From the sequence record MW749006.1: DNA of 64,000 nt; one strand, written 5' to 3'. Made by a program: the position numbers and the translations under genes. Below, in pieces: positions 10,818 through 42,334 of the stretch (position 1 is its first letter; the number at the start of each line of letters is the position of its first letter). Below the pieces are notes generated by a model. It did not search any database and was not told the DNA's origin. It saw only the letters and a list, made by a program, of their open reading frames with translations.

Positions 10818-11473
10818 TATCACCTTCTGTAGAGATAATGAACTACACACCAAACATGGAAGCTACTATTGAAGAAGCTATTCGTACTTGTTATAAAAGT
10901 GAAGATAAGATCTGTGAAGGTTCTGCTAACAAGATCATTCGTAACATCATGGATCGTCACCACGAATCTACTATCGAACACGCTTTAATTACCGTTCGGT
11001 TTGTATGTGACCGTGGTGTAACACATGAAGGTGTTCGTCACCGTCTTAGTTCATTCAGTCAAGAGTCTACTCGTTACTGTGGTTACGATAAAGGTAAGTT
11101 CGGTAATGAGATCAGTGTGATTGATATCCGTGGTGGATTCCCTAACATGGGAGCTAGATTTGATGTCTGGTTAGAAGCTATGGAAGCAGCTGAAGGTTAC
11201 TACATGAAGATGAAGGAGATGGGGGCTACTTCAGAAGAAGCTCGTTCTGTTCTACCTAACTCTTTAAAGACTGAACTAGTCTGGAGTGCTAACCCTCGTT
11301 CGTGGCGACATGCTTTCCAGATGCGAGTAGAGAACTCTGCTCACCCGCAGATAGCAGAAGTGATGGTTCCTTTGTTGGAAGAGTTCAGTTCTAAGTGGCC
11401 AGTATTGTTTGAAGACATTGTTGTAGGTAGTAAACACCGTAGGTTTCTGAAAGATCCACAAACACATATATAG
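10808..11473 (+). CDS. thyX: Flavin-dependent thymidylate synthase ThyX
   Basis: HESTIEH, DRGVTHEGVRHRLSSFSQESTRY (RHRxxSxxxxSxRY motif), EEARSVLP, AHPQI. Confidence 0.95.
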   Translation: MRLISPSVEIMNYTPNMEATIEEAIRTCYKSEDKICEGSANKIIRNIMDRHHESTIEHALITVRFVCDRGVTHEGVRHRLSSFSQESTRYCGYDKGKFGNEISVIDIRGGFPNMGARFDVWLEAMEAAEGYYMKMKEMGATSEEARSVLPNSLKTELVWSANPRSWRHAFQMRVENSAHPQIAEVMVPLLEEFSSKWPVLFEDIVVGSKHRRFLKDPQTHI

Positions 11474-11536
11474 TACCTAGACTACTGAGCTATTCATTTA
11501 GCTCAGTAGCTTACTAACACATTTTAATATAAGGTA
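11464..11536 (+). promoter_or_regulatory. Promoter motif copy 3 + leader stem-loop + RBS module (paired with 42263-42334)
   Basis: acatatatagtac overlaps the thyX stop codon; hairpin ctactgagcta-ttcatt-tagctcagtag at 11482-11509. Confidence 0.75.
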
Positions 11537-11542
11537 ACTGTT

Positions 11543-11710
11543 ATGTCTTGTAATTGTGAGTTGAAAGAAGTAGTGTCAAAAAAGGATCTAGTAGACCGAC
11601 TTAAAAAGCTAGTTGGGGGTGACACTCAAGATCATTTTAAATACTTCTCTCCGATGTTAGTAACTAAACATCTTGAAGAAAAAAACAATTCTTCTAAATC
11701 TATAAATTAG
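11543..11710 (+). CDS. Small hypothetical protein (55 aa, below ORF-track cutoff)
   Basis: AAGGT RBS, ATG 11543 to TAG 11710, directly after the promoter module. Confidence 0.55.
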   Translation: MSCNCELKEVVSKKDLVDRLKKLVGGDTQDHFKYFSPMLVTKHLEEKNNSSKSIN

Positions 11711-11718
11711 GAACATCT

Positions 11719-11985
11719 ATGTCAGACTCACATGAAGAACGAGTGAAAGCATTGAAGGAAGGGATGTTAGTTAAGATTGACGATCTAGATGAACAAATGG
11801 AAAGGTTAAAGAAAGAAATGCTTGCTAAGATTAAGAGTCTTGAAGAAGACGATCCTATGCGTGAAAGGTTTCTAGGAGTGTATGAGTTACTAGAAGAAGA
11901 ATCTCCTCAAGAATTTGAAGAGAAGTTAAAGCAAGCTGAAGAAATAAATAACTCAATCGTGTTAAATCGAGAAACTAAACGTTAG
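11719..11985 (+). CDS. Hypothetical charged helical protein
   Basis: 88-aa ORF with RBS. Confidence 0.65.
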   Translation: MSDSHEERVKALKEGMLVKIDDLDEQMERLKKEMLAKIKSLEEDDPMRERFLGVYELLEEESPQEFEEKLKQAEEINNSIVLNRETKR

Positions 11986-11993
11986 AGGTTCCT

Positions 11994-12500
11994 ATGTCAG
12001 AGAAAACAGAATCTGAGCACAATTGGTCTTTGAGAGAAGAACGTGCTGTCCTAGAACAAGCATTTGAGCACTCCTCTAATCCGAAGAAATTGAAGAAGTT
12101 TGTAGCTAATCTATACAAGAAAGTTACAACTGACGAAGCTCGTTTAATGTGTCAGGATATCTATTCCTCTAAAGATCCTGTAAAGTATGTTAAAGATTCC
12201 ATAACTAGAGTTCGAGACTTTGCTATTCTAATCGAACAGTTTATGGAAGACGGTAACCATGGTGCTATCATCACTGGTAGTGGTGGTAGAGACGTTTATC
12301 CTATTAAGGTAGATGCCTTACCTCAGTGGTTAACTGGAGACGATCCATGGACTCAGGAGGACGAACTAGAGATCATGCTTAAAGCTACACGTGGTTGGAT
12401 GCAAGAGTATAATAAAGATTACTTCTACGGTAAGATAGTGTTGTTCCCTTACTTTGGATTCTCAGGTATACCTCGGGTTTACGAGTTAACAGCTAAATAA
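11994..12500 (+). CDS. Hypothetical protein
   Basis: 168-aa ORF with GAGG RBS. Confidence 0.7.
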   Translation: MSEKTESEHNWSLREERAVLEQAFEHSSNPKKLKKFVANLYKKVTTDEARLMCQDIYSSKDPVKYVKDSITRVRDFAILIEQFMEDGNHGAIITGSGGRDVYPIKVDALPQWLTGDDPWTQEDELEIMLKATRGWMQEYNKDYFYGKIVLFPYFGFSGIPRVYELTAK

Positions 12501-12515
12501 ATTAAGATAACTACT

Positions 12516-12545
12516 AGTCAACTACCCCTACCCAAAGGAAGGGGT
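12516..12545 (+). repeat. 30-bp hairpin-forming direct repeat, copy A
   Basis: agtcaactacccctacccaaaggaaggggt; 29/30 identical to 14859-14888. Confidence 0.85.
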
Positions 12546-12564
12546 CTCTGTAGAGTAAATTCCG

Positions 12565-13077
12565 ATGAAAGATAAACACGTAATATTAACAGGTGGAGTT
12601 CGTAAAGGGGAGTTTACAGTAGTATCCGCTAGTACTCCGCGCAAGGTAGCTATAGTTGGTGGAGAACTTAGTATACCGTTAGGTGACTACACCGTTGAGA
12701 ACAAACCAATCTTTAACACAGCTTTCAGAACACACACTGTAAACACTCTACTCTATGACAGTATCTACTCCCTCTTGTTAAGTAGTAGAGATAAAGAAAT
12801 AGCAATAGAACTCACTCACCCTGATAGAGTAGTCGATTTAACTTTACATCCCAACGGAGATCTAACCCAAACAGATAGCGATGTGATGCGAGGTTATATT
12901 GAGGATAACCTTATATCAGTAACCAACCCTAAAACCAATAAGGTTACACTCACTGTTAAGGTCTCTAACCATAAACTAAATATCAGACGCTACGACAATA
13001 AACAAATTATTGGTAGTGTTAAATTAGGTTTGAATATCAGATCCGAACCTACAATCTTTATTAAATACAAGGTTTAA
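12565..13077 (+). CDS. Hypothetical protein
   Basis: 170-aa ORF. Confidence 0.65.
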   Translation: MKDKHVILTGGVRKGEFTVVSASTPRKVAIVGGELSIPLGDYTVENKPIFNTAFRTHTVNTLLYDSIYSLLLSSRDKEIAIELTHPDRVVDLTLHPNGDLTQTDSDVMRGYIEDNLISVTNPKTNKVTLTVKVSNHKLNIRRYDNKQIIGSVKLGLNIRSEPTIFIKYKV

Positions 13078-13081
13078 TAAC

Positions 13082-13591
13082 ATGACTACATTAACTAAAG
13101 AAGATATAAACAATAACTTCATGGTAGATCCGAAGCTACGTAAGAAGCTTAACACATGGGTACAGCAGTACTATAACAACGTAACAGATTTAAGTTATAT
13201 TGCTGCTGGTTATTTTAGTAACTTCATAAATTGTCATTCTGACGGATTCTTTCGTATAGCATTTGACGGAGATTACTTTGACGTTGATACTCTAGAGGAC
13301 TCTGTGAAGACTCTACTTAAAGTTGACTCTGAACAGAACACCTTGTTAGTTGCAGCTGGAGACTGTGCTAGTCGCGTCTCTGATAGTGGTAAGTTTGTTA
13401 TTAGTATAGAAGGTCTAGGTGTGAAAGTTCGTCTAGTGATAGACACCCTGGCTATAGAAACAATACTTCACGAGCGGATACCTGGTGACACTGGTTTAGA
13501 TTGCGGTAGGATGTTAAACGAGATGCTTGAAAGTAATAGTAAATTACCAGAACGCAAAGTTCAAGTAATCGTTAAGAATATAAACAAGTAG
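13082..13591 (+). CDS. Hypothetical protein
   Basis: 169-aa ORF. Confidence 0.65.
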   Translation: MTTLTKEDINNNFMVDPKLRKKLNTWVQQYYNNVTDLSYIAAGYFSNFINCHSDGFFRIAFDGDYFDVDTLEDSVKTLLKVDSEQNTLLVAAGDCASRVSDSGKFVISIEGLGVKVRLVIDTLAIETILHERIPGDTGLDCGRMLNEMLESNSKLPERKVQVIVKNINK

Positions 13592-13600
13592 GGGTAGCAC

Positions 13601-14878
13601 ATGTACAGTGAAGACATCTTAAATAAAGTCTCTGTTGAAGTATTGAAAAAGATTCAGGGAGAGTTTGGTATTGAGGTCAGACTATCCCGAGGTCACACTG
13701 GCGAGGTTTGGAGTGAAAACTTAAGTTACATAGTTGATCTTCTTAACGGATCAGTTAAGAAGTTACTTGTGTGTTTAAAGGACAACACTATAGCTGAAGT
13801 ATACGTTCTTGAAAGAGATGAACATCGCTTAGTCATTAGAATAGCACCTACTGATAAGAAACTAGATTCTAGTCGCTTGGTGTTTGAACTTAGCCATTTA
13901 GTTGAAAACAAAGAAAGTTCTTACAATAACGAGTTGTTGTGTAAGCTGTCAATTCGGATTATTAAAGACATCAAACAAACAGTAGAGACAGGAACTTTAA
14001 GTTACGAAAATATCAGCATTAACTCGGGTATAACTCGACTACCTTTCACTAAGGAAACAGTAGTTAATTTATTATCCCAGACTAGTCTTAAAGTGGTGGT
14101 AAATGTAATAAGTGATAGTCTAGTAAGAAGTTCTACTTGGTGTATAACTTTCACTAAGAAAGAAGATCATCTGTTAATGAAGTTACAACGAACTTTCAAT
14201 ACAAAAGTTCATGAATTTAGTTACGCACTAGCAAACTACGTTACTATTATAAACGAAACTTCTGAAACTAATGAACAATTCAACACTATGTTGAAATTAA
14301 TCAGACCGTATGAAACGGATCGCTTAACTTCAGTCAACATGCCCTCTAACCGATATCCTAAGGAAGAAAACGTGATTAAACAAGAACAAGGTTTGCCTTT
14401 TGACCTAGAACAGTTATGTAACAAGGTTAGTAACACATGCGGTTCTGTTCACTCGTTAAAGGAAACAATAAGCGCTATCACACAAAACCAAGAACTTACA
14501 GTTCAGCTAGAAAGACAAAAGACACGCTTTCTGCTAGAAGTAACCGGTGATATTGTTTCTAATTGGAACTCAGCTGTAGAGTTTCGATTCTCCCCTGACT
14601 TACCTGTAGAATCTCTGTTCTTACATTTCCCAGAAAGAAGTGTAGATCTGAACCGATACGTAGTTACTTTTCTAAACAACTGTAAACTAAAGTACATTCA
14701 TAAAACAGATGTTAAAGAAGAACATTACTTACTGAGTGTAGAGTTAGACGATAAAACTTACAACGTAGGTATTCCTGTTAACGCTGTTGATTTCATCACC
14801 ATTCTATCTGCCTTCGGTGGTCGAGTGGAGATCAGCACTCTGTTGGATCATTTTCGAAAGTCAACTACCCCTACCTAA
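13601..14878 (+). CDS. Hypothetical protein
   Basis: 425-aa ORF; last codons (KSTTPT*) are supplied by repeat copy B. Confidence 0.7.
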   Translation: MYSEDILNKVSVEVLKKIQGEFGIEVRLSRGHTGEVWSENLSYIVDLLNGSVKKLLVCLKDNTIAEVYVLERDEHRLVIRIAPTDKKLDSSRLVFELSHLVENKESSYNNELLCKLSIRIIKDIKQTVETGTLSYENISINSGITRLPFTKETVVNLLSQTSLKVVVNVISDSLVRSSTWCITFTKKEDHLLMKLQRTFNTKVHEFSYALANYVTIINETSETNEQFNTMLKLIRPYETDRLTSVNMPSNRYPKEENVIKQEQGLPFDLEQLCNKVSNTCGSVHSLKETISAITQNQELTVQLERQKTRFLLEVTGDIVSNWNSAVEFRFSPDLPVESLFLHFPERSVDLNRYVVTFLNNCKLKYIHKTDVKEEHYLLSVELDDKTYNVGIPVNAVDFITILSAFGGRVEISTLLDHFRKSTTPT

Positions 14879-14888
14879 AGGAAGGGGT
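14859..14888 (+). repeat. 30-bp hairpin-forming direct repeat, copy B
   Basis: agtcaactacccctacctaaaggaaggggt. Confidence 0.85.
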
Positions 14889-14907
14889 TTCCATGGAGTA
14901 AACAATT

Positions 14908-15249
14908 ATGAAAGATCTAGGTAAGATAAACTACAAGTACATCAAAGACCCAGAACCAACTAAACAAGAAGGTTTGTGTGTGGTTGTAGTGTTTCGAAAA
15001 GATATAAGCGTCTTGGAAGATTTACTTATACTAGGTATGTGTAACACTAATTTACCAAGTAACGTCCTTAAACTTAAACCTTGCAAGTTCAACTTAACTA
15101 CAGATGTTGAGAAGAACGAATTCATTCTAGATATAGACACTGAGATTCTTGTAGACTACAAGATCAAATGTCACTTGTTCTTAGTTGACGAAGTATATCT
15201 AGCGTTACCAGATGGTCGTAAGGTACATAACCTTTACACTAAACTTTAA
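14908..15249 (+). CDS. Hypothetical protein
   Basis: 113-aa ORF with GGAG RBS. Confidence 0.65.
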   Translation: MKDLGKINYKYIKDPEPTKQEGLCVVVVFRKDISVLEDLLILGMCNTNLPSNVLKLKPCKFNLTTDVEKNEFILDIDTEILVDYKIKCHLFLVDEVYLALPDGRKVHNLYTKL

Positions 15250-15259
15250 GGAGTATAAC

Positions 15260-15754
15260 ATGACTCACATTGAGAAATTGAGTAAGTTGATCTTAGATGA
15301 CAATAAGATCACTACAATGATTAGCGATGCGTTAAAAGAACGGTATCGTTTAGAGTTGGCTTATCTAAAGACTGAAGATAAGTTACAAGAATTAGCAGAC
15401 GCCATGATTCTTCAGTTAGTTAATAACTGGAACCAAGGGGCTGTTATTACTTTTAACAAAGAAGTAATAGTAGAAGAACACTTCACAGGTTCTAAAGTTG
15501 TAACTATTGATATCGTAAAGAACTCTGTAACTACGAAGGACTCTGTGCTTCGCATTGACATTGACACTGAAGTTAGTGAAGGTGGGTATTTGATTACCAT
15601 CTTCCGCGATGATGAAGCCACTCGGGTTAAGTGTCACCGTGACTTTATTAAGGAGATTCTGTTGATCACTGAAGATGATACACGCATATCTTTAAGTGAA
15701 GTAGTTCTTAACGTAACGAAAGAGCTAACTGAGAAACTATCCAATAAAGAGTAG
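15260..15754 (+). CDS. Hypothetical protein
   Basis: Start at ATG 15260 with AAGGAG RBS. Confidence 0.7.
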   Translation: MTHIEKLSKLILDDNKITTMISDALKERYRLELAYLKTEDKLQELADAMILQLVNNWNQGAVITFNKEVIVEEHFTGSKVVTIDIVKNSVTTKDSVLRIDIDTEVSEGGYLITIFRDDEATRVKCHRDFIKEILLITEDDTRISLSEVVLNVTKELTEKLSNKE

Positions 15755-15760
15755 AGCGAT

Positions 15761-16405
15761 ATGCAACCACATGTTTTCTTTGTAGATGGACCCAATGCTG
15801 TTGGTAAAGATTACTTCATTGAAGGACTAACTAATACTATTAATGAACTACACCCAGAAGTAGAAGTTATTAACATACGAGCTACAGACTATCTCCCTAA
15901 GAAGGTGGTCCGTAAGTATGAAAATGACCAAACTAACCGTGTGTTCGCTGAAGAGATCTTCCGTGGACACATTAAACTACTGTGTGATATAGCAGATAAA
16001 GCTAAAGAGAATACAGTAATAATCCTTAACCGTACCTTGATTACTTACTTAGTCTACAATGTCTACCCTCGCTTACAAGCTCTGAGTGACCGTGTGGATG
16101 GGGATTACGATGAGGTACATAGTAGCATTGAAATCTACGGATTACTCCTCCAGAAGGTTCTACCGGACGCACAGACTACCTTTGTGCGTTTAGATCTACC
16201 TGGAGATTCAGTTCAAGCAACAGAAGATACTATTGAACGTATGTTAGCTCGTGGTGAGTCTAAAGAAATAGACAAGACATGGGTAAGATACTTAATAGAT
16301 CAGTTCCGTGAAAACTACGATACACATTACACTAGTTACAAAAACTATGTACATTGTAGTAGTGAACATTATAAAATAGTAGCTAAGAAATACTTAGTCA
16401 ACTAA
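15761..16405 (+). CDS. Deoxynucleoside monophosphate (thymidylate-like) kinase
   Basis: N-terminal FFVDGPNAVGKD P-loop, ILNRTLITYLVY (DR-motif region), ERMLARGE lid. Confidence 0.7.
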   Translation: MQPHVFFVDGPNAVGKDYFIEGLTNTINELHPEVEVINIRATDYLPKKVVRKYENDQTNRVFAEEIFRGHIKLLCDIADKAKENTVIILNRTLITYLVYNVYPRLQALSDRVDGDYDEVHSSIEIYGLLLQKVLPDAQTTFVRLDLPGDSVQATEDTIERMLARGESKEIDKTWVRYLIDQFRENYDTHYTSYKNYVHCSSEHYKIVAKKYLVN

Positions 16406-16447
16406 CTCAACGAAAGTTATTATTCTTAACATATAGGAAACATAAAC

Positions 16448-16927
16448 ATGTTAGACAACTTAGATACTCTTGAAATTGTAGACGACGAACTTGTAAAGAA
16501 AACAAAACCAAAGAAAGACTACACTAAGTATTACTATTGGTTATTTGCTCTCTTCATTCTAACTTCGATCTTTGGTGTATTAGCTAAAGAAGCTAAAGAC
16601 TCGTTTGTTAGTAAAACAGTAGTGGATGTTCGTCCCTGTGAATACAACGTGAAAGGAGTGGAGGTCAAAGGTAAACGTTACTATACTTATAAGTACAACG
16701 AAGTGTTTGGTATTCGTTTCATTGATACCTCTAAGATTGGTGAACGCACGGATATTCTACATGAGTTTAAAGGAACTACAATTATCGGTATGAACGACTC
16801 TGAATGGTGGTCACTTAACTTAGGTAAAGGTGAACCCACTATTAAAACACTAGGTAAAGCAGAGTCCTACACTTTTGTTCAAGATGGTTTAGCTGGAGTA
16901 GTAAGCTATGACAACTTCTGTAAATAA
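16448..16927 (+). CDS. Membrane-anchored hypothetical protein
   Basis: Single hydrophobic segment YYWLFALFILTSIFGVLA after a basic patch. Confidence 0.65.
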   Translation: MLDNLDTLEIVDDELVKKTKPKKDYTKYYYWLFALFILTSIFGVLAKEAKDSFVSKTVVDVRPCEYNVKGVEVKGKRYYTYKYNEVFGIRFIDTSKIGERTDILHEFKGTTIIGMNDSEWWSLNLGKGEPTIKTLGKAESYTFVQDGLAGVVSYDNFCK

Positions 16928-20684: not shown

Positions 20685-20745
20685 TACATATATAGTACTT
20701 AGATATCCACTCCTACTCATTGACTAAAGTTTGTGAGTAGGAGAC
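20685..20745 (+). promoter_or_regulatory. Promoter motif copy 4 + leader hairpin
   Basis: tacatatatagtac, then ctcctactca...tgagtaggag stem. Confidence 0.7.
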
Positions 20746-22349: not shown

Positions 22350-22388
22350 ACAACTAAGAACCACCACCCGGCTTTCGCTAGGTGGTGG
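22350..22388 (+). repeat. 39-bp direct repeat copy A (hairpin without U-tract)
   Basis: acaactaagaaccaccacccggctttcgctaggtggtgg, identical to 23021-23059. Confidence 0.92.
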
Positions 22389-22415
22389 GATACTTAATGT
22401 AGAGAGAACATAAAG

Positions 22416-23018
22416 ATGGAAGAAGTAAAGACAGAACATCAGTTGCGTGAGTTAATAAGAACTAATCCGGGAGCAGTAAACTGGGATAACGTTAGTTACC
22501 ATCAGACTCTATCAGAGGAATTCATCCGTGAGTTCCAGACTAAGTTAGATTGGTATGGCATTAGTTTTAACCAGAAACTATCGGAAGAGTTCATTCGTGA
22601 GTTCCAGGATAAGGTAAATTGGAGAGGCGTTAGTTACCGACAGTCCTTATCCGAGGAGTTCATTCGTGAGTTCCAAGATAAGGTAAACTGGGAACAAGTT
22701 AGTCAACAACAGACTTTATCGGAAGAGTTCATCCGTGAATTCCAAGATAAGTTAAATCTTGAGATTATCTTCACCGTTCAAGACTACAGTGAAGACTTTG
22801 AGCTAATGAAAGTATACACACAAAACAACCCTGACTTACTCAGGGTGACTAAGATAGCAATCAACAAAGAACTACTAGAGAAACTAGAAGCCTGTGAAGA
22901 TGGCGTTGTGTGCTTCCTAGAACACACTAAACCGGATGAATCTATCGACTGGTTCGAACTCAAGAGACGACATAAATGGAAGAGTGACTTGTCTTGGTTG
23001 TTTGAGAGATTAGTTTAG
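22416..23018 (+). CDS. 23-aa tandem repeat protein (W..[VI]S..Q.LSEEFIREFQDK[VL][ND])
   Basis: Four complete 69-nt repeats at 22482-22757 plus a degenerate fifth. Confidence 0.85.
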   Translation: MEEVKTEHQLRELIRTNPGAVNWDNVSYHQTLSEEFIREFQTKLDWYGISFNQKLSEEFIREFQDKVNWRGVSYRQSLSEEFIREFQDKVNWEQVSQQQTLSEEFIREFQDKLNLEIIFTVQDYSEDFELMKVYTQNNPDLLRVTKIAINKELLEKLEACEDGVVCFLEHTKPDESIDWFELKRRHKWKSDLSWLFERLV

Positions 23019-23020: not shown

Positions 23021-23070
23021 ACAACTAAGAACCACCACCCGGCTTTCGCTAGGTGGTGGTTTCTTTTTTC
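23021..23070 (+). terminator. 39-bp direct repeat copy B acting as terminator (U-tract present)
   Basis: Same hairpin as copy A followed by tttcttttttc; lies between convergent genes. Confidence 0.85.
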
Positions 23071-23076
23071 TTTCTT

Positions 23077-25668
23077 TTACGCAGTTACAGTTATGTATCC
23101 TGATAGGTTAATCTTCTCAGGTTTGTTATTAGTCAACACTCTAACTAAGTTAGCCACGAATCTATACTGATGTAAGTTTAGATTGACGTGTGTGTTACCT
23201 AAGTGTGGGTGTATCTCCACTAAGTTATCTGGAAGGTTAGCTCTGATAGGGTCTAACTTATGTAGTAGTTTATAGTCTTCTTGATTCAACAAATCAAAGA
23301 ACACCGTGTCGTCATACGGATTGATATAAGTGGATGCAGGTATAACACCCATTAACATTTCATGTATTACTCTAGACACTACTGGAGAGTATAGATAGTG
23401 GTGATCTGAGATGATGTTAAACTCATCTATATTAGGTTCAGGATAGATCAAGTTAAATAACCCAGCTATCCTTTCGTTAAGATCACTACTTTCCTTATAG
23501 AAATCTGTAGTGTTTAAACCAGTCATGTCATATAAAGGAATCATAGTCTCTGACATAGAGTAAGGTAAACCATTCAGAGCGTCATCTAAACGAACAGTGT
23601 TATCCTCTTCAGCAAACCTTAAGTTATCTCTACTGTAGATCTTACCACCAACAAAGATACTAAAGACTCTATCGTCTCTTATGTCGTAAAGGTTATTTCT
23701 GCCTAACACACCGTTGTTAACGAAGCCATTGATTTCATGTTGATTAAGTTCATCAATGCTACTAACAACTCCTCTAGCTCGTATGTGTACTTTTTGATTC
23801 TCTTTAGTGTAGTCTATATAAGTCTTATTGACTATGTTAATATTAGGTAACTCTAAGAAGTAGTCTAGGTTATAGTTAAGACGATATCCGTTTAAGTAAA
23901 CTTCTAATGTCTCAGGTACATAGTCAAGAGGATGGCGTTTCAAACCTAATCCTCTATCCTCTACATAACTAATAGGAAAGAACATGGTACCTTGTGTTAA
24001 CGGAACATCTACATCCCACAACACCGGGTTATCCTGGTAAACTACTTTAACCTTTTCTATATCAGATAGATTAAGAGTAGCTAGTTGTCCGTTTATAACT
24101 ACTTTGCTAGCATCGTTAGTTATATCTACCCAAGGAGACTGTCTAGTGAAGTCCTGGAAGCTAGCCATCAATAAACGATACTCAAAGTTACGTAGATTAA
24201 TCACTTCACCTTTAACATACAACGCACCGTGACTCGCAACTTCAGTACCACGTATAAACTCTAAATGTCGGATGTTATTGCTACTAGGAATGTAAGCGGG
24301 ACCTTGTGTAGTAAAACGACCAGTCATTCGTCTATTCTTATCGTACTCATAGACAGTAGAATCGTTTCTATAGATTCTTGGAACTTGAACATAGTTATCA
24401 GTACTACTTATTCGTATAGGAGACTTACCATATTCAAAAGAAATACCGTTGTAACCTATAGCTGATCTAGATAACTCTTCAGTTACTTTTGACATAGATT
24501 TAAGTGATGCTAATTCAAAGTAGTCACTTGCTTCTAATGTCTCAGCACGAAACTCAGTGATAGTATAGTTAGTATTAGTTAAAACATCCAACTGTACTGT
24601 CTTAGGTAATTTATATAGTTCATGTAACTTTAAGGAAGTGTATTTCAACTCTCTACTTAAACCACTCTTACGAGTATATATAGTTATGTATTTATCACCA
24701 GAGACTCCACCTATTTTATTAGATAAAGTAGTTGCTTGATTATTAACATACTGAGTGTATAAACTATAGTCTTTATCAGTTACGTTTCTAACAACAAAGT
24801 CTTTATGTTGATAGAAGTATATACCTGTTGTGTGACCTGTTGGAATCGAGGTGATGTAGATTTCATTATCATCTTCATACTGAATTCTGTTTATAACAGG
24901 ATCTCTATATAGTAAGTATTTTAACTTGGTATCCTTACTAGAAGAGAAAGTACGTAATCCGTTAATGGGGTATCTTTCTTTAGAGATGATAGATTGATCA
25001 TACAGAACTTCAACTCTAGATGGTGTTGGTAAATGTAACGTGACGTTATCGGTATAATAACCGTTTACGTATACCATTACATCACCACCACTTTGCTTAT
25101 ACTCTGCTATCTTAGTTTGTACAGTTACTTTATTAGCGTTGTTATTTACTATATAAGAACTTAACTGAATGCCTTTACGAACAGGTTGTGTTAAATACTC
25201 GTTAGTTGTGAAATAACGATTACTGTAAACTCTGAGGAACTTGAAACTCTCCACGTCAAAGTTTCTTGACATCTCTAAATCTATTTTAGTTGCAAAGATG
25301 ATACTGTTCTCATCTATGAACATATAGTAGATGTTAGCTCTGGGAAACATAACTCCTTCTTGGTTATATAGTTGTAAGATATAGTCTCTGTCAACCATAT
25401 CTTTACTTACTTGAACCCAAGAGTCTTTGTACCAGTCTCTGTTCTGTCTTAAGAGGTTTATAACCGTAGGGTTAAGGTTTCCTATAAGGTATACATGAAA
25501 CGTGTTAGTGGAGTCTGGGAGGTGTTTAGAAGCACCAGAATAAATAGCTACATTACGTTTAGCTGGTCGCTTAGGTTTAGTAACTCTAATTAGATTAAAA
25601 GTATACTGTCTATCTTGATGTGGTGCACAGTAGATGTTTTCTAAGGCAAATCTTTGTATTTCACGCAC
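23077..25668 (-). CDS. Large virion structural protein (phiKZ gp27-like)
   Basis: 863 aa; begins with FALENIYCAP.QDRQY; syntenic, divergent from tail sheath. Confidence 0.65.
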   Translation of the reverse strand: MREIQRFALENIYCAPHQDRQYTFNLIRVTKPKRPAKRNVAIYSGASKHLPDSTNTFHVYLIGNLNPTVINLLRQNRDWYKDSWVQVSKDMVDRDYILQLYNQEGVMFPRANIYYMFIDENSIIFATKIDLEMSRNFDVESFKFLRVYSNRYFTTNEYLTQPVRKGIQLSSYIVNNNANKVTVQTKIAEYKQSGGDVMVYVNGYYTDNVTLHLPTPSRVEVLYDQSIISKERYPINGLRTFSSSKDTKLKYLLYRDPVINRIQYEDDNEIYITSIPTGHTTGIYFYQHKDFVVRNVTDKDYSLYTQYVNNQATTLSNKIGGVSGDKYITIYTRKSGLSRELKYTSLKLHELYKLPKTVQLDVLTNTNYTITEFRAETLEASDYFELASLKSMSKVTEELSRSAIGYNGISFEYGKSPIRISSTDNYVQVPRIYRNDSTVYEYDKNRRMTGRFTTQGPAYIPSSNNIRHLEFIRGTEVASHGALYVKGEVINLRNFEYRLLMASFQDFTRQSPWVDITNDASKVVINGQLATLNLSDIEKVKVVYQDNPVLWDVDVPLTQGTMFFPISYVEDRGLGLKRHPLDYVPETLEVYLNGYRLNYNLDYFLELPNINIVNKTYIDYTKENQKVHIRARGVVSSIDELNQHEINGFVNNGVLGRNNLYDIRDDRVFSIFVGGKIYSRDNLRFAEEDNTVRLDDALNGLPYSMSETMIPLYDMTGLNTTDFYKESSDLNERIAGLFNLIYPEPNIDEFNIISDHHYLYSPVVSRVIHEMLMGVIPASTYINPYDDTVFFDLLNQEDYKLLHKLDPIRANLPDNLVEIHPHLGNTHVNLNLHQYRFVANLVRVLTNNKPEKINLSGYITVTA

Positions 25669-30653: not shown

Positions 30654-30666
30654 TACATATATAACA
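30654..30666 (+). promoter_or_regulatory. Promoter motif copy 5 (tacatatataaca)
   Basis: Intergenic, upstream of the HD-domain gene. Confidence 0.6.
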
Positions 30667-30714
30667 CTTAGAGACTATACAGAATACATCTGTTAGGACA
30701 TTGGAGTAATAATT

Positions 30715-31844: not shown

Positions 31845-31897
31845 TACATATATAATACATAGATGTCTATACCTATCAGCTTAGGTTGGTAGGTATA
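31845..31897 (+). promoter_or_regulatory. Promoter motif copy 6 + leader hairpin
   Basis: tacatatataatac, then ctatacctatcagc-ttag-gttggtaggtatag. Confidence 0.72.
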
Positions 31898-31922
31898 GTT
31901 ACTTCCATATAGGAGAAACAAT

Positions 31923-36029: not shown

Positions 36030-36035
36030 AGTCCG

Positions 36036-36278
36036 ATGACTACTGAAAGAGATTTACACACTATCAACGCTAAAGAATCTGAGGGAACTGAAAAGTATCC
36101 TTGGTTTATCTTTGACTTTAACTCTAAGGTATTATATACCGTGTCCGTTATTAAAGGTTATTTTAGAGTTGGTCGATACTACTCCGATAACGGAGAAGCT
36201 AAGATTGAGTACACTGATATTAGTGACGAAGAGATAGATGCTTTGTTCTATCACGTTTACCCTAAACCAACCGAATAG
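36036..36278 (+). CDS. Small paralog-array protein 4
   Basis: FIFDFNSKVLYTV motif. Confidence 0.6.
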   Translation: MTTERDLHTINAKESEGTEKYPWFIFDFNSKVLYTVSVIKGYFRVGRYYSDNGEAKIEYTDISDEEIDALFYHVYPKPTE

Positions 36279-36329
36279 TAATATTAACTCTACACTAAAC
36301 CCATAAACTTAAAAGAAGAGAGACAACAT

Positions 36330-36668
36330 ATGTCATTTCACCTGATCAAAAAAGAAGACAAAGACAACAACCTAACTGTAGCTACCGTGTTTGACGGTAC
36401 AATGGGTATGTTGTATCGAGTAACTAAGAACGTAGATAAGTTCTATGTTGAACATTTATCTGAGTCTAGTAACGGTGAAACTCTATTAGCTACAGAAGCT
36501 AAGTTAGACGATAGCACTGCGTTAGAGATTCTTAAGGTAGCTATTCCTAGTACTGTACTTGGTATCAAGAAACTAGTAACTACTCACTATGAATTAAGTA
36601 AAGAAGAAGTTAAAGATAATACTTGTGTCATTACTCAGTTTAAAGTAGAAGGTAGCGCAGCTCACTAA
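36330..36668 (+). CDS. Small paralog-array protein 5
   Basis: TVFDGTMGMLYRV motif. Confidence 0.6.
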   Translation: MSFHLIKKEDKDNNLTVATVFDGTMGMLYRVTKNVDKFYVEHLSESSNGETLLATEAKLDDSTALEILKVAIPSTVLGIKKLVTTHYELSKEEVKDNTCVITQFKVEGSAAH

Positions 36669-36679
36669 TAAAGACTTAT

Positions 36680-36726
36680 CCACCAAGAAGCCTAATAAGC
36701 TTCTTGGTGGTAGTGTTCTTTTTTTC
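36680..36726 (+). terminator. Intrinsic terminator
   Basis: ccaccaagaagc-ctaataa-gcttcttggtgg followed by a T-tract. Confidence 0.8.
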
Positions 36727-36737
36727 TTTAGATGTGA

Positions 36738-36797
36738 CTGAAATTCTTACAGTTACATATATATTACCTAGAGAGATACAGTGTAATTCTATACTGT
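36738..36797 (+). promoter_or_regulatory. 60-bp promoter (copy 7) + leader hairpin module, paired with 49095-49154
   Basis: 54/60 identical to 49095-49154; contains tacatatatattac and tacagtgta-attc-tatactgt. Confidence 0.8.
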
Positions 36798-36819
36798 ATA
36801 ATTATTGTTGGAGGTCTCT

Positions 36820-37104
36820 ATGTGTAATTTATCAGCTTTAGTTAATGGAGATCTCACTGATCGCCAGATACTATCAGTTAAGAAACTAGATGAAGTTCGT
36901 AAAGAAGGACTACCTTTAGTAGAACGCATTCCGTACATAATGGAATGTATGTTCGAAATGGAACTCTCTTTTGAGTACGTTGAAAGTTTTATTGTTAAGT
37001 TGATTAACAGAGCCAAAGAAAGACACTTAAAAGAAGTGTCTTCTAATTTAACAAACCTAGACACTGAGTTGATGGAGTTATCTCCACGGGTGTTTCTAGG
37101 TTAA
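36820..37104 (+). CDS. Hypothetical protein in a monocistronic cassette
   Basis: GGAGG RBS then ATG 36820. Confidence 0.65.
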   Translation: MCNLSALVNGDLTDRQILSVKKLDEVRKEGLPLVERIPYIMECMFEMELSFEYVESFIVKLINRAKERHLKEVSSNLTNLDTELMELSPRVFLG

Positions 37105-37147
37105 GAAGGAACACATAACCGACGTTTAATAAAGTATAGTTTAAAGA

Positions 37148-37187
37148 AACCACTACCCGGCTAACGCTAGGTAGTGGTTTCTTTTTT
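37148..37187 (+). terminator. Intrinsic terminator; exact reverse complement of the 49461 hairpin
   Basis: aaccactacccggctaacgctaggtagtggtt followed by tcttttttc. Confidence 0.85.
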
Positions 37188-37193
37188 CTTTCT

Positions 37194-39626
37194 TTACAAC
37201 TCAATTACTTCTACATCTCTAAAGTTAGCTAGAGTCTGGTCTACATGTGTGATCAAGAAGATCTGACTGTAGAAACTACCTGACATCAAACTAAAGATTA
37301 AGTTAAACAACTTAGCTCTATGGTTAGTGTCTAGTGTTAAACCAAACTCATCTAAGAACAAACAACTCCCTTCTAACCCTAACAACCTGTACATCACTAA
37401 CTTAAAACTAAGATTGATGATCTCCTTCATACCGTTAGATACTAAGTTGATATCGTCTATAGTCATCTTGTCTTCTACCTCTACCTTAAACTTATAGTTC
37501 AAAGCTTCACTCTCTATATCTAGAGGACGCAGTATCATCTTGTAATCCCAGATACCACGGATAGTGTTATTGATGTTGTTAATTATGTTGTTAAGGAAAC
37601 TACTCACTGACTTAGCAATAATACCGTTCTTAGGTGATAGTTCATCTAGAGTGATGTTAAGTACTTTAGAGTTCTCTTGGTAGTCTTCTATTAATTTCTT
37701 AGCTTGTTCTACGGAGTAAGAGATAGTCTTGTGGTGTGCTAACTCATTCTCAGTCTCTACTATGATTACCTTTGACTTTGTTAAGTCAGTGTCTATAGTC
37801 GCTATGATCGCGTCTACAACGTTTGAGAGGTTACTGGTAGTGACATTAGTCCTAGACGTTTCTATCTCAGTGTGGAGCTTATCAAGGTACGTGTGGAGAG
37901 TGTTAGCTCTTTGTATGTGAGAAAGATTAGCTAGTAAGTCTTTCTTCTTAGCTTGTAGCTCAAACGCTAAGCTACTTAGTGTATTAACTTCTTCTTCTAT
38001 ATTAGAGAGAGATGTATTACGTAATGTATTTAGAGTTTCTAGACCTTCGTGTATCTCTGATAGTCTAGTGTCTATTTCTGTTAATCTTCTAAGGTACTTA
38101 ACATCTAAAGCAGCTTGTGCTATGACTGTCATTATCTTAGGTGGATCTTCGTAGACGTAACCTAATGAATTTACTCTATTCCAAACTTCTTGAAGAGATT
38201 CTCTAGTAACAGAAACAAGACGACTAAACTGTCTGTGTTGGTTGAAGTACTCTTGTTGTTGCTCTTGAATAGCTTCTATCTCTTTAACTTTAGTCTGTGC
38301 TTTATGTTTGTCCCCTAGAACTGTCTGTAGCTTTGTTCTAGCATCTTTTAAGAGAGTAGGGATATCCTTGGGTGACCAAGTGTATTCACAGCTAGGACAG
38401 GTCGTGGTGTCGTTAGAGGAGGTGTAGTCTTCTATAGCTTTCTCTAAACGAATCTCTTCTTGAATAGCTTTGTTAAGAAGTTCGTTGTAGTGTCTTAGGT
38501 TGTTATCAGCCGCGTAAGCTGAATCTCTAGAATACTTAAGTATGTTGTCTACCGTTGGGTTAGGTTGCATCTCACTTAGTATCTCAGGTAGAGATGTTTC
38601 TAACTGATATATCTCATTAGAGTAGAGAGTTACCTTTGACTTGTCTTTAAGTAGGGTAAGAGAAGACTCTAGATTAGATTGCTCCATAGCTAGATGTGCT
38701 TCTTCTTGTAGTAGAGAATCTACGTCTACTGAAGCTAACAAGGATAAAGCTTTACGTTCCTTATCTTTTTCCTCTAGTGTAGTGTAGAGTTGATTGAGTT
38801 GAAAGTCTACTACGGATAGTTCTGAGTTATACTTAGTAGTGTACTTAGGTATATCACCACGAGGGAAAGATGTTCTTAGAAGATAGTACCTTTTGTTAAG
38901 GTCTTTTAACTTCATAGTTAAGTCTTTGTGTGTGTGGTAGAGATCTAACTGAGATCCATCTGACTTATGTTTGTAAAGGGTTGTTCTCATCTCTAGAAGT
39001 AAGTCACTGTAATCTTTAGTTCTTTGTAGTGTAGCGTTAAGAGTTTCAAGACGAGTAGTGTCTGAAAGTTTAGCTTCTTCACGTTGTAGTATAGACGCTT
39101 GAGACTTTAATAGTAACTCATTGTTCTTTAGCTCTTCTCGCAGCTTCTCGTACGCTTCTAAGACACTATCTATGTTAAGGTGAGTGATAGTATTGAATAA
39201 CTTCTTACGTGCAAGGAGCGACATACTAGTGAAGTTCTCTTTACCAACAAAGATGTCATGTACTACTTGAGAGATATTAAAGTGTTTAAGAACTAATGCT
39301 CTTTGTGTAGATACAATAGCTGCAGTGTTTAATTCTTCTCCATTCATAACGAATCTAAACTTAGCTGACTTCTCTGTGAAGTCTGAGATAAGAATATACT
39401 TGTCATGGTCTTTCTCTATATGTATCTCTTTGTATCCACCTTGATTGAAGTCGTTCTTATCTGAAGGTAGTGGAGTAAGTTCATTGAAGAGAGAAGACTT
39501 ACCAGATCCATTAGGACCTGAGATCATGGTTAATTTGTTTGTTGGGTTGAAGGTATGTTCAAAGGTGTTATCGTCTCTGAGTGGCATACGTTTAAAGTTA
39601 ACTAGTTGTATGTAAGTGATGAACAT
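37194..39626 (-). CDS. sbcC: SbcC/Rad50-like SMC ATPase (phiKZ gp165-like)
   Basis: ISGPNGSGKSS Walker A, coiled coil, CPSC zinc hook, VSNGMKE signature, FLDEFG Walker B, ITH. Confidence 0.9.
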   Translation of the reverse strand: MFITYIQLVNFKRMPLRDDNTFEHTFNPTNKLTMISGPNGSGKSSLFNELTPLPSDKNDFNQGGYKEIHIEKDHDKYILISDFTEKSAKFRFVMNGEELNTAAIVSTQRALVLKHFNISQVVHDIFVGKENFTSMSLLARKKLFNTITHLNIDSVLEAYEKLREELKNNELLLKSQASILQREEAKLSDTTRLETLNATLQRTKDYSDLLLEMRTTLYKHKSDGSQLDLYHTHKDLTMKLKDLNKRYYLLRTSFPRGDIPKYTTKYNSELSVVDFQLNQLYTTLEEKDKERKALSLLASVDVDSLLQEEAHLAMEQSNLESSLTLLKDKSKVTLYSNEIYQLETSLPEILSEMQPNPTVDNILKYSRDSAYAADNNLRHYNELLNKAIQEEIRLEKAIEDYTSSNDTTTCPSCEYTWSPKDIPTLLKDARTKLQTVLGDKHKAQTKVKEIEAIQEQQQEYFNQHRQFSRLVSVTRESLQEVWNRVNSLGYVYEDPPKIMTVIAQAALDVKYLRRLTEIDTRLSEIHEGLETLNTLRNTSLSNIEEEVNTLSSLAFELQAKKKDLLANLSHIQRANTLHTYLDKLHTEIETSRTNVTTSNLSNVVDAIIATIDTDLTKSKVIIVETENELAHHKTISYSVEQAKKLIEDYQENSKVLNITLDELSPKNGIIAKSVSSFLNNIINNINNTIRGIWDYKMILRPLDIESEALNYKFKVEVEDKMTIDDINLVSNGMKEIINLSFKLVMYRLLGLEGSCLFLDEFGLTLDTNHRAKLFNLIFSLMSGSFYSQIFLITHVDQTLANFRDVEVIEL

Positions 39627-39701
39627 GTCTATAGTCCTTATCTGATCATTGGATGTTTCCTTTAGTTCTTTTTGAATAGAAGAATAGGGAAGTTATTTAG
39701 C

Positions 39702-39715
39702 TACATATATAATAG
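39702..39715 (+). promoter_or_regulatory. Promoter motif copy 8 (tacatatataatag)
   Basis: In the divergent intergenic region upstream of the XRE gene. Confidence 0.6.
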
Positions 39716-39903
39716 ATAGAAGTTAATAGTGAGTAATAAAAAACTCACAGTAATATTTGTTGGTCTTCTCTTTCTTATCTAAGGAAGGGAAACCTAAGGA
39801 AGGGAAGGTTTAAAGACATAGATATAGAGAGAGAGTATAGAGGAATAGTAAGTGTAGAGAGATATACTCTCTATAGTCATTAACCTAGTGAGTGTTACTT
39901 GTT

Positions 39904-40257
39904 ATGAGTTTAAGTGAACGTTTAAAGGAGTTAAGAGAGAATAAGAAAGTATCACTACAAACAGTAGCTGATAGTGTTGGTGTAACTAAACCCCATATAT
40001 GGGAGTTAGAGAAAGGTACATCTAAGAATCCTAGCATTAGTTTAATAGTTAGCTTATGTGTTTACTATAATGTTACTGTAGACTATCTACTTGGAGTTAG
40101 TGTTGATAGTTCTAATCCTTTAACGTTGTACTTCGAAAGGACACTAAAGAAGTCTGGTATTCGTGAGTTAAGTGTTGATGATATGGATGTTTTGACACTG
40201 GCTATTGATATGGCGATAGCTCTCATAAAACAACGGAAAGAAAGTAATAAGGACTAG
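39904..40257 (+). CDS. XRE-family (HTH_3) transcriptional regulator
   Basis: LSERLKELRENKKVSLQTVADSVGVTKPHIWELEKG...PS...YYNVTVDYL. Confidence 0.9.
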   Translation: MSLSERLKELRENKKVSLQTVADSVGVTKPHIWELEKGTSKNPSISLIVSLCVYYNVTVDYLLGVSVDSSNPLTLYFERTLKKSGIRELSVDDMDVLTLAIDMAIALIKQRKESNKD

Positions 40258-40260
40258 GTT

Positions 40261-40608
40261 ATGTCAGTACGCATTAATTTTGATCTAGCAGTAGAAGGTA
40301 AGACTGAGTGGTCTTACAATAAGGTATTACCGACAGAGAATAGTCTTGTTATACAGAGTTATGCTGAGCGGGTTATCAAGGATATAGTGGATGGTATTCG
40401 TGTAAGAGTATTTCGTTTGAACGAATTAGGTTGGGATTCTTCTTACACTACGGAGTATGAGAGTTCTTTACGTAACTTGTTAAGTGGAGTGTTTAGAGTT
40501 AGTTGTATAGCCCAGGATACTATTCACAAACAATATCCTTGTAAAGACAGCATTATGTTAGCTACAATTATTACTCCTTGTGTTACTGGTGTAAAGAGTT
40601 TAGTATAA
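40261..40608 (+). CDS. Hypothetical protein
   Basis: 115-aa ORF. Confidence 0.6.
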   Translation: MSVRINFDLAVEGKTEWSYNKVLPTENSLVIQSYAERVIKDIVDGIRVRVFRLNELGWDSSYTTEYESSLRNLLSGVFRVSCIAQDTIHKQYPCKDSIMLATIITPCVTGVKSLV

Positions 40609-40689
40609 ACTATTGAGAAGGGGTGGCTTAGGCTGCTCCTTCTTATTATTATTTTATTGTGAATGAGATGATTATTTAAGGGGAAGATT

Positions 40690-41598
40690 ATGAGTTTAGT
40701 TAAGAACGAAGACGGTAGTTATACTGTTAATGCTACTAAGTTAGATGTTAAGAATGAAAGTAATCAGATTTGGAAGAGTCAGCTTGTAAAGGCTATTTTG
40801 GATAATGCTGATAGTTCATTTAGAACTAAGTTGAAAGAAGGTGGTGTGTATTCTAACTGGGGATCACCCACACCTTCTAAAGACATGTCTATTGAGGAAA
40901 GTTTTGAGTTCTATACACAAACAAATACTGAAGATACATGTGCTATCGTTGTAGATTGCAACTTGGAGGAAGATAACGTAGTACAAGTACGTTTCCGTCC
41001 TTTCGGTCCAAAGGGACATCTACTACAGTCTTTAATAGAGGGAGGAATTAAACCAACTTTCGGCATACGAAGTATTGGTGAGGTTAATTACGACGAAACA
41101 CACACACAGATCGTTTCGGTTAAAGAGATAATTACTTTAGATGTAGTTACTAAGGGTCTTAAGGACCTAACATCAAAACTTTTCTTTCCGGAACTTCAGA
41201 CAGTTTACAATGACCCTGATGTGGTGTTGGTTGACTTAGATAACATTGCTGCTAAATATTCCGTTAAAGGTGAAGAATTAGAACGCATACCTTTAGAAGA
41301 AGTCTTAACTACCACACGCGAAACAGTTGTGTCTCCCGATAATTTTAAACATGTCAGTGGTGATATCTACATAGTTAGAACTCAAGCGGGTTTAAAGAAT
41401 GCACTTAAACAGTACGTTAACCAACACAACACTGAAGACCTTAGAGAAGCACGATACTATCTAGTAGGTTATCCTAAGTCGTATCCTTCTGTAGTTTCAT
41501 TCTCTACAGAGTACCAAGGATATCACTATGTAAAGGTTAACTGTGTGCATGTTAATAAATTAACAAAAGCTATTACTGAATCGGAGAATAAAATATGA
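40690..41598 (+). CDS. Second prohead-protease-fold paralog fused to an unknown C-terminal domain
   Basis: GGVYSNWGSP (cf. GALYAEVGHP), FRPFGPKG, PTFGIRSIG, IITLDVV. Confidence 0.5.
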   Translation: MSLVKNEDGSYTVNATKLDVKNESNQIWKSQLVKAILDNADSSFRTKLKEGGVYSNWGSPTPSKDMSIEESFEFYTQTNTEDTCAIVVDCNLEEDNVVQVRFRPFGPKGHLLQSLIEGGIKPTFGIRSIGEVNYDETHTQIVSVKEIITLDVVTKGLKDLTSKLFFPELQTVYNDPDVVLVDLDNIAAKYSVKGEELERIPLEEVLTTTRETVVSPDNFKHVSGDIYIVRTQAGLKNALKQYVNQHNTEDLREARYYLVGYPKSYPSVVSFSTEYQGYHYVKVNCVHVNKLTKAITESENKI

Positions 41599-42242
41599 TC
41601 ATGTCAGATAAGTGGTTGATTAAGAATCTACATAAACTAATGACTGGAGGTAGCAGAGGCGCTGTACGGTACGTTGACCGTGAGACAGGTATTCCTTTAG
41701 CTAACAACTTTCAAATGGGTAGAGAGCTTCCTGGGGACGCTAGACGAGTTGTTTCGTATGGTGTTAGTAGTTATGGTTACGATGTTCGTTTAGATAACAA
41801 TGTTAATCACATCCGTATCTTTAGTAACGTCAAGGTTACAGAGATTAATCCTAAGAAGATGAGTGAAGATAACTTCTATCAACCGACTGTTTTAGTAGAT
41901 GAAGATGGTGGTGAGTACGTGTTGATTCCACCTCACTCCTATCTACAAGCTCCTACGGTTGAGTACTTTGATATACCTAGAGATATCATGGTGGTTGTGT
42001 TGGGTAAGAGCACATATGCTCGTAGTGGGGTTGTGTGTAACGTTACTCCTATTGAACCAGGATTTCAAGGTAACGTAGTTATTGAGTTAGCTAACGTTAC
42101 TAGCTCTCATGTTCGTTGTTACTTGAATGAAGGAGTAGCTCAGTTTCTATTCTTCCAAGGGAATGAACCTTGTGGTTTAAGCTACGCTGACAAAGGTGGT
42201 AAGTATCAAGGTCAGACGGGTATGACTATGGCTAAGGTATAG
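41595..42242 (+). CDS. dcd: dCTP deaminase
   Basis: SYGVSSYGYDVRL, GKSTYARSG, VTPIEPGFQG, EGVAQFLF, GKYQGQ. Confidence 0.93.
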   Translation: MIMSDKWLIKNLHKLMTGGSRGAVRYVDRETGIPLANNFQMGRELPGDARRVVSYGVSSYGYDVRLDNNVNHIRIFSNVKVTEINPKKMSEDNFYQPTVLVDEDGGEYVLIPPHSYLQAPTVEYFDIPRDIMVVVLGKSTYARSGVVCNVTPIEPGFQGNVVIELANVTSSHVRCYLNEGVAQFLFFQGNEPCGLSYADKGGKYQGQTGMTMAKV

Positions 42243-42262
42243 TTTTGGAGATAGTTACAAGT

Positions 42263-42334
42263 ACATATATAGTACATAGACTACTGAGCTATTCATTTAG
42301 CTTAGTAGTAAACTAACACACTTTAAAGAAGGTA
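42263..42334 (+). promoter_or_regulatory. Promoter motif copy 9 + leader stem-loop + RBS module (paired with 11464-11536)
   Basis: acatatatagtacatagactactgagctattcatttagcttagtag...aaggta. Confidence 0.75.

Follow-up and report, generated by a model that had tools for sequence, protein, structure and literature searches.

A duplicated promoter and hairpin leader at two sites of gene turnover in Bacillus phage AgentSmith

Why do two unrelated small genes of Bacillus phage vB_BspM_AgentSmith (MW749006.1; genome 200,233 bp, 37% GC) stand behind nearly the same leader, and why does the gene content beside that leader differ from one relative to the next? The leader is a module composed of a promoter-like motif, a hairpin and a ribosome-binding site (RBS). 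Its two copies, A and B, lie in the window analyzed here, which is the last 64 kb of the record (record positions 136234-200233). All coordinates refer to the window unless marked "record", and genome-wide searches used the full 200,233-bp AgentSmith genome reassembled from the record.

How alike are the two copies? The initial annotation had reported near-identical promoter, stem-loop and RBS modules at both sites, each preceding a different small open reading frame (ORF), and both observations are borne out. The modules span 11443-11542 and 42242-42341 on the + strand. A repeat search (family D7) aligns 11443-11527 with 42242-42326 at 82% identity over 85 nt, with weaker similarity from this block to the ATG. 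Inside it lies a 45-nt core, present only at 11465-11509 and 42264-42308, with two differences between the copies and zero occurrences expected from 100 shuffles. The core, CATATATAGTACnTAGA plus the hairpin, consists of CATATATAGTAC, one free base, TAGA, and an 11-bp stem with a 6-nt loop. Its sole stem difference, C>T at 42303 (11504 in copy A), turns G-C into G-U, so the claim that this substitution preserves pairing stands; the remaining differences fall outside the stem, at alignment column 13, columns 46-48 and in the tail.

Copy A follows the ThyX gene AGENTSMITH_138 (10808-11473, + strand), whose last 30 nt and TAG stop codon lie within the promoter, the stop being in its TATA box. The upstream promoter element CTGAA (11447-11451) conforms to the consensus yTGrA, located 13 nt before CATATATA in an alignment of 23 sites. 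The core promoter ACATATATAGTAC, located by motif search, occupies 11464-11476, and the conserved TAGA with the predicted transcription start region occupies 11478-11483; TAGA is invariant in seven module sequences, and the start is placed by the rule for phages AR9 and phiKZ given below. The hairpin (11482-11509), supported by folding and covariation, pairs 11482-11492 with 11499-11509 around the loop TTCATT (11493-11498). The leader tail (11510-11542) contains the conserved ACTAACAC and the RBS TAAGGT (11530-11535), and is followed by g139 (11543-11710, + strand), an ORFan of 55 aa that matches no Pfam family. Copy B begins directly past the stop codon of the dCTP deaminase gene dcd (AGENTSMITH_183; 41595-42242, + strand). 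It comprises the upstream element TGGAGA (42246-42251), the core promoter ACATATATAGTAC (42263-42275), TAGA with the predicted start region (42277-42282), the hairpin (42281-42308; stem 42281-42291/42298-42308, loop 42292-42297, G-U pair 42286/42303) and a tail (42309-42341) with ACTAACAC and the RBS AGAAGGT (42327-42333). The 62-aa ORFan g184 follows (42342-42530, + strand).

A whole-genome search allowing up to 6 mismatches finds exactly two copies of this hairpin in 200,233 bp, and a covariance model run on the genome scores the two copies at 87 and 84 bits, the next best hit reaching at most 26 bits. Both 68-nt leaders fold below shuffled sequences (z = -4.9 and -4.6), as do the 45-nt segments of copies A and B (z = -6.9 and -5.9), and the predicted leader folds leave the RBS unpaired. 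Could the likeness stem from duplication of the genes themselves? The proteins g139 and g184 are unrelated to each other. AgentSmith has three paralogous leader families (A/B; 36756/49113; record 42688/93722/166889), each preceding unrelated downstream proteins; gene duplication as the origin of the leader similarity is thus ruled out.

Is the hairpin maintained by selection? Searches of GenBank phages in near and distant modes returned only AgentSmith itself and no close relative, and a literature search found no paper on the phage. Relatives were sought with g185, dcd and ThyX as protein queries against Logan and ENA assemblies from wastewater, landfill, biogas and food, and 15 metagenome contigs with 84-92% nucleotide identity to AgentSmith were read; they are cited here by sequence labels (L-numbers). 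In IMG/VR and the JGI metagenomes exact and degenerate hairpin patterns gave 0 matches, and a ThyX search of IMG/VR gave none; a dcd search there returned L005 (55% GC, unrelated except for dcd) and L006, a distant relative (45-55% at the amino acid level) with one promoter-like site. Wastewater metatranscriptome contigs 99-100% identical to 40700-40869 and 42713-42866 (within 40700-46200) indicate that wastewater harbours close relatives of AgentSmith, which are possibly transcribed there.

In a gapless alignment of seven module sequences, none of the 11 stem pairs is lost: 100% of the 75 cells are paired, compared with 10-40% in controls with slid partners; none of 500 shuffles reaches the observed pairing or covariation score. 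Five of the 11 pairs vary, three by two-sided changes (U-A to C-G, A-U to G-C, G-C to A-U) and two to G-U only. Six of the seven sequences agree in the loop TTCATT and its closing pair, and modules of both types, A and B, retain ACTAACAC, while the 3 nt immediately past the stem vary freely. Pairing rather than sequence is preserved through compensatory and G-U changes, which shows that the RNA structure of this hairpin is under selection, as the initial annotation had proposed. The occurrence of G-U pairs on the sense strand only, together with the weaker antisense fold of copy B, speaks for a structure formed by the RNA of the sense transcript. As a separate observation, the same two stem pairs read GA/TC at site B in L014 (4987-5029) and at site A in L022 (7367-7422), contigs from different samples, where both AgentSmith copies carry AG/CT. 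If L014 and L022 are of a single lineage, evolution of the two copies is concerted.

What happens to the genes beside the module? In every relative seen, it sits at one of the same two loci, after ThyX (site A) or after dcd (site B). Among AgentSmith and 12 metagenome contigs, it has six different downstream neighbours (g139, a g141 homologue, another gene, g184, fam20, or g185' directly) and four different upstream neighbours (ThyX, orf94, dcd and fam19). Site B reads dcd, module, g184, g185, g186 in AgentSmith; dcd, module, an unrelated 129-aa gene (fam20) in place of g184, g185', g186', g189' in L018; dcd, fam22, fam19, module, g185' in L014 with L007-9; and SbcC, dcd, module in L011, where g180-g182 are missing. 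In L017 and L019, dcd is followed by the same promoter with an unrelated UUCG-loop hairpin and then g186'. This alternative hairpin is absent from AgentSmith and differs between its copies only by G-U-compatible transitions. The gene g184 is absent from L007, L017 and L019. At site A, AgentSmith has ThyX reading into the promoter, then g139, g140 and g141. L022 and L023 have a different ThyX C-terminus and an extra 94-aa gene (orf94) before the module; in L022 the module is followed by g141', g139 being absent, and in L023 by a second hairpin and another gene. The module of L023 is 98.5% identical to copy A, against 84% for the flanking genes.

The borders of homology coincide with parts of the module. 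Blocks of blastn similarity end at 42243/42245 (left edge), 42283 (promoter/hairpin border), 42314, 42337 (right edge) and 11448/11460. Homology to L018 stops at 42337, 5 nt short of the ATG, that to L007 at 42314, and that to L017 and L019 at 42283, where an independent landfill metagenome contig also breaks. The A-type tail stands before other genes in L022 and L010; in L010 it is 19/20 identical to copy A and precedes the fam20-g185 cluster that is at site B in L018, which hints at exchange between the A and B module types. The expectation that gene content near the module varies among relatives is thus upheld, with breakpoints at the module edges, and the downstream genes, far from being invariant behind two fixed sites, vary. 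The idea of a mobile cassette fared worse: there is no sign of the module itself moving, all relatives carrying it at the same two loci, and indels occur at module-free borders as well.

Some further details of these borders were seen. Relative to 39703-39905 in AgentSmith, L011 (2530-2680) lacks ~170 nt of the g180 leader along with g180-g182, so that dcd stands directly behind the promoter at 39703; one junction of this deletion is at the 8-nt repeat TAGTGAGT, present twice in AgentSmith. Right-hand homology breakpoints lie at or just before an ATG, and many module-adjacent genes begin with ATGTC(A/T)GA, encoding Met-Ser-Glu or Met-Ser-Asp (11543, 11719, 11994 and 42534; L007 484, L010 26 and 426, L022 7425). 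This could be a short patch shared at cassette borders or merely a preferred start context.

Which polymerase would read the promoter? The motif yTGrA-N13-CATATATAGTAC-nTAGA occurs at ~24 AgentSmith sites, all on the + strand, of which A and B are the closest pair. Its exact form CATATATA-n-YA accounts for 23 sites genome-wide (13 in the window), which share yTGrA 13 nt upstream of the core and TAGA 2 nt past it; the 24th is a variant before the chimallin gene. The yTGrA element at the spacing of copy A is also found at 20687, 31847, 36756 and 49113. The AgentSmith core ACATATATAGTAC agrees at 10 of 13 positions with the experimentally defined AR9 early promoter consensus AAATATATATTAT-N6-G, and in AR9 and phiKZ transcription starts 6 nt after the motif (PMC5312081). 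phiKZ itself shows the repeated early motif TATATTAC-N6-G within its first 50 kb, and the AgentSmith core is of the same 8-mer class; early promoters of phiKZ and 201phi2-1 have conserved -10, -20 and -30 regions (PMC11512511). By analogy, we infer that the AgentSmith motif belongs to the early promoter class of virion RNA polymerases (RNAPs). Seven genes of the phage are annotated as RNAP subunits, six of them as beta subunit and one as DNA-directed RNA polymerase, the best RNAP homologues (PhiPA3, phiKZ group) share ~33% identity, and the beta subunit gene g133 is homologous to PhiPA3/phiKZ subunits. The label of chimallivirus also holds, because gene 98 (AGENTSMITH_98) encodes chimallin (Pfam PF25677, 82 bits with the cut-off at 27, E = 3.5e-23; also PDB chimallins 7sqt and 7sqq), and a gene for a PhuZ/tubulin-like protein is annotated.

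Most of the motif sites have a hairpin within ~10 nt downstream, with a different sequence at each. The 45 nt after the motif have a mean minimum free energy (MFE) of -10.0 kcal/mol, against -5.5 kcal/mol for random genome windows (Mann-Whitney p = 3.3e-7; mean z = -2.3). The description of A and B as a duplicated pair is right in that the genome holds only two copies, but the pair is not isolated: it is a sub-family of a promoter and hairpin architecture of ~24 sites that includes at least two further paralogous leader families.

What, then, does the module do? On balance, it is probably an early-transcript leader cassette, with a hairpin at or near the 5' end that protects the mRNA or marks it and with a second role as a junction for gene exchange in the manner of the promoter-early stem-loop (PeSL) cassettes of T4-type phages (Arbiol et al. 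2010, PMC2839356; Comeau et al. 2014, PMC4122927). The cassette spans the stretch between the stop codon upstream and the ATG downstream, with yTGrA, CATATATAGTAC 13 nt on, TAGA, a hairpin 0-10 nt later and an unpaired RBS. By its likeness to phiKZ and AR9 early promoters, the promoter would be read by the injected virion RNAP. Transcription would start in or just after TAGA, so that the hairpin, whose stem begins 1-5 nt past TAGA with the start placed by analogy only, would form at or within a few nucleotides of the mRNA 5' end. There it may limit 5'-end-dependent decay (RppH and RNase J1 in Bacillus) and/or mark early transcripts. Protection from decay is the simplest role, because Bacillus mRNA is stabilized downstream of a hairpin at or close to its 5' end and BsRppH needs at least 2 unpaired 5' nucleotides (PMC3997798). 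As for exchange, the conserved 100-nt patch between genes would offer homology at which recombination between co-infecting relatives swaps the adjoining ORFs, as proposed for the T4-type PeSLs.

Several observations weigh against this explanation. Indels are also found at the module-free borders g187-188, g189-190 and g192, and neither the inserted fam22-fam19 nor orf94 has a module on both flanks; the module may therefore only mark a plastic region rather than mediate exchange. Because the relatives are short metagenome contigs from different samples, the order of events is not recoverable. With the AR9/phiKZ spacing the start would lie within the stem by 1 nt; at several other sites the hairpin would begin upstream of the start. 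Across 23 sites the difference in folding stability between the + and - strands is not significant (p = 0.16), so the argument for RNA over DNA rests on the substitution pattern of the orthologues. The leaders of the eight annotated AR9 early promoters are essentially unstructured (mean MFE -1.2 versus -3.6 in random windows), and seven phiKZ early sites have no consistent hairpin. A hairpin as a general feature of jumbo-phage early promoters is hence rejected for AR9 and was not seen at the phiKZ sites; this class of polymerase does not require one, and the promoter-proximal hairpins are a lineage feature. A generic stabilizer would not need as much conservation as the loop and the ACTAACAC tail display, which hints at a sequence-specific partner. 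Finally, the motif also fits a host sigma-A promoter.

The last two points each lead to an alternative, and we rate both as possible but unlikely. Could the hairpin be a sequence-specific RNA operator, its loop and ACTAACAC recognized by a phage or host RNA-binding protein or a small RNA that co-regulates the operons after ThyX and dcd? This would fit the retention of the loop and closing pair in six of seven sequences and of the tail in both types while the 3 nt past the stem vary, as well as the near-identity of the L023 module amid its more diverged flanks. Since other promoters have different hairpins, a generic role would not require A and B to be alike. Yet the relative in sample SRR11702755 carries this hairpin at site A (L023) and the unrelated UUCG hairpin behind the same promoter at site B (L017), so that co-regulation of A and B is not conserved, and recent common descent or gene conversion could also account for the conservation.

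The other alternative, about as improbable, changes only the promoter part and leaves the remaining explanation the same: the promoter would be a strong host sigma-A promoter, as in T4 PeSLs, rather than one for virion RNAP. The sites can be read as xTGAAA or TGGAGA, a 16-nt spacer and TATAGT, TATAAT or TATATT, with 9-10 of 12 matches. However, the invariant CATA before the -10-like hexamer and AC-nTAGA after it go further than such a promoter and agree with the extended, AT-rich motifs of AR9 and phiKZ early promoters (PMC5312081). Moreover, the genome carries split beta and beta' subunit genes in two sets, and the region shows no enrichment of sigma-70-like sites (26, versus 40 in shuffles).

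More doubtful is a role as in PeSLs, in which the hairpin would attenuate or terminate upstream read-through and insulate the cassette, and the promoter would restart transcription. The position between stop codon and ATG is that of PeSLs, in some PeSL sub-classes the stem-loop follows the -10 box (PMC2839356), and the hairpins at 39729 and 49132 pass a lenient terminator scan. Against it, the A and B hairpins are followed by the tails CTTACTAACA and TAAACTAACA, lack a U-tract and are not called terminator-like; the phage has canonical GC-rich terminators with T-runs elsewhere (D5); and a terminator past the start site would cut short the transcript of the cassette itself as well.

A bolder reading, which we regard as very unlikely, is that the hairpins are address tags on virion-polymerase transcripts, read by a phage factor that sorts, exports or preferentially translates them. 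The tags would double as integron-like exchange sites, and the tag shared after ThyX and dcd would define a co-handled regulon kept alike by gene conversion. If so, new ORFs would gain expression and addressing in a single recombination step. The least probable explanation, that the inverted repeat works as DNA, either as an operator for a dimeric protein such as the helix-turn-helix (HTH) protein g180 or as a cruciform or recombination site causing the rearrangements, would suit the perfect 11-bp palindrome of copy A, the clustering of breakpoints at the module with one exactly at the promoter/hairpin border, and the stem-loop-binding recombination protein on which the PeSL authors speculated (PMC2839356), but 6 cells in 3 pairs are G-U (G-T in DNA and C-A on the opposite strand), breaking DNA symmetry while keeping sense RNA pairing, the minus strand of copy B folds worse (-15.9 versus -18.5, with an internal mismatch), and a stem sequence free to change as long as pairing is kept is unexpected for a protein operator.

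Other members of the promoter and hairpin family lie in the window, all on the + strand. They include 3774-3818 (hairpin 3798-3818, z = -4.6), before g133; 20686-20743 (hairpin 20710-20743, z = -5.2); 30655-30696 (hairpin 30675-30696), with a leader paralogous to record 42688 and 93722 (repeat family D13); 31846-31898 (14-bp hairpin 31867-31898, z = -4.5); and 39703-39748 (hairpin 39729-39748), found by motif search and folding before the HTH gene g180. A second module pair (D9) consists of 36733-36813 (promoter 36755, hairpin 36776-36799), before g178, and 49090-49170 (promoter 49112, hairpin 49132-49157, by folding), before g197. These two are 84% identical, and both stem differences of the second copy from the first yield G-U pairs. 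A different repeated leader unit, CAACTACCCCTACCnAAAGGAAGGGG, comprising a hairpin and an RBS, lies at 12516-12573 before g142 and at 14859-14916 before g145, and also at record 71772 (D17); the extra hairpin past the module in L023 (3088-3114) begins with CAACTACCC, as does this unit.

A repeated GC-rich unit, AACCAC[CT]ACC..GGT[GA]GTGGTT with a long T-run, occurs at the ends of convergent gene blocks (22359-22406, 23030-23077, 37148-37195 and 49461-49508; 77-92% alike; families D5 and D10). This unit represents the canonical terminator of the phage and is not to be confused with the hairpins near the promoters. Rfam has no match at the gathering score in the window, and in related loci only group I introns, located elsewhere (RF00028; 77 and 82 bits for the two introns found). 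The one at L022 184-535 splits the RNAP beta subunit gene where the window gene is continuous (5028/5029); a related AgentSmith intron (record ~117384-117713; L004 17584-17913) sits between genes 112 and 113. Coding tandem repeats are found at 1955-2369, 22476-22751, 51909-52046 and 61320-62147. They comprise Gln/Pro-rich repeats with a 12-15-nt period (D1, D3, D4, D8), three 69-nt units within g158, and 114-nt units near 61.3-62.1 kb.

Why do these leaders matter? A hairpin at or near the predicted transcript start after most early-type promoters is a leader architecture foreign to the characterized models AR9 and phiKZ. The natural compensatory variants are a ready set for probing the role of a 5' hairpin on transcripts of an injected multisubunit RNAP, and the relatives illustrate concretely how this group of phages exchanges small ORFans. 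For a study of sequences alone, the evidence for selection on structure and for the junctions is solid; the function of the cassette and any mobility are inferred. The cassette represents no new principle.

How does the module compare with known systems? With the virion polymerase promoters of phiKZ and AR9 it shares the extended conserved AT-rich core (TATA[GAT]TAC versus phiKZ TATATTAC), conserved upstream positions and location on the strand of the non-structural genes, including those for RNAP and chimallin. It differs from them in having hairpins and in conserving TAGA 2-5 nt past the core instead of G at +7. Duplicated early cassettes are not unique to AgentSmith, because phiKZ (L026) has a near-identical unit of promoter, leader and RBS at 2635-2740 and 4486-4590 (motifs at 2665 and 4516), before gp6 and gp10.1, without a hairpin. 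The SAS/ESAS of Cluster K mycobacteriophages are short conserved units, some with inverted repeats, just upstream of many start codons; compared by description, they are tied to translation starts and not, unlike the AgentSmith module, to a promoter. The 5'-terminal stabilizer stem-loops of the B. subtilis aprE leader and of E. coli ompA and papA (PMC3997798) resemble it in that a stable hairpin lies at the 5' end or a few nucleotides from it (here the predicted 5' end), followed by an accessible RBS, and the host genus relies on 5'-end-dependent decay; a stabilizer role does not account for the conservation of the loop and tail.

The closest parallel remains the PeSL, which the initial annotation had proposed as an analog. 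The layout and the turnover of ORFans agree: both are composites of ~100 nt from stop codon to ATG with an early promoter, a stem-loop and a Shine-Dalgarno sequence, and the AgentSmith unit is likewise repeated in the genome, before small ORFans and beside the indels and replacements that separate close relatives. The details of the parts do not. PeSLs have a near-perfect sigma-70 promoter, and terminator activity and mini-circles have been demonstrated for them (PMC2839356, PMC4122927), whereas the AgentSmith promoter resembles the phiKZ/AR9 early type, the whole unit is common to two copies only, and AgentSmith is a chimallivirus of a Gram-positive host. Unlike most PeSL stem-loops, the AgentSmith hairpin, which varies in sequence by site, always lies downstream of the -10-like box, has no U-tract and was not classed as a terminator, features that suggest a transcribed 5'-leader structure rather than a promoter-terminator composite. 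Because it lacks a terminator stem-loop and has a different promoter class, we treat the AgentSmith cassette as a variant of the PeSL kind rather than as a PeSL member; as such, it would extend cassettes that combine regulation with a recombination junction, hitherto known in T4-type phages, to a jumbo phage with a chimallin gene and a Gram-positive host.

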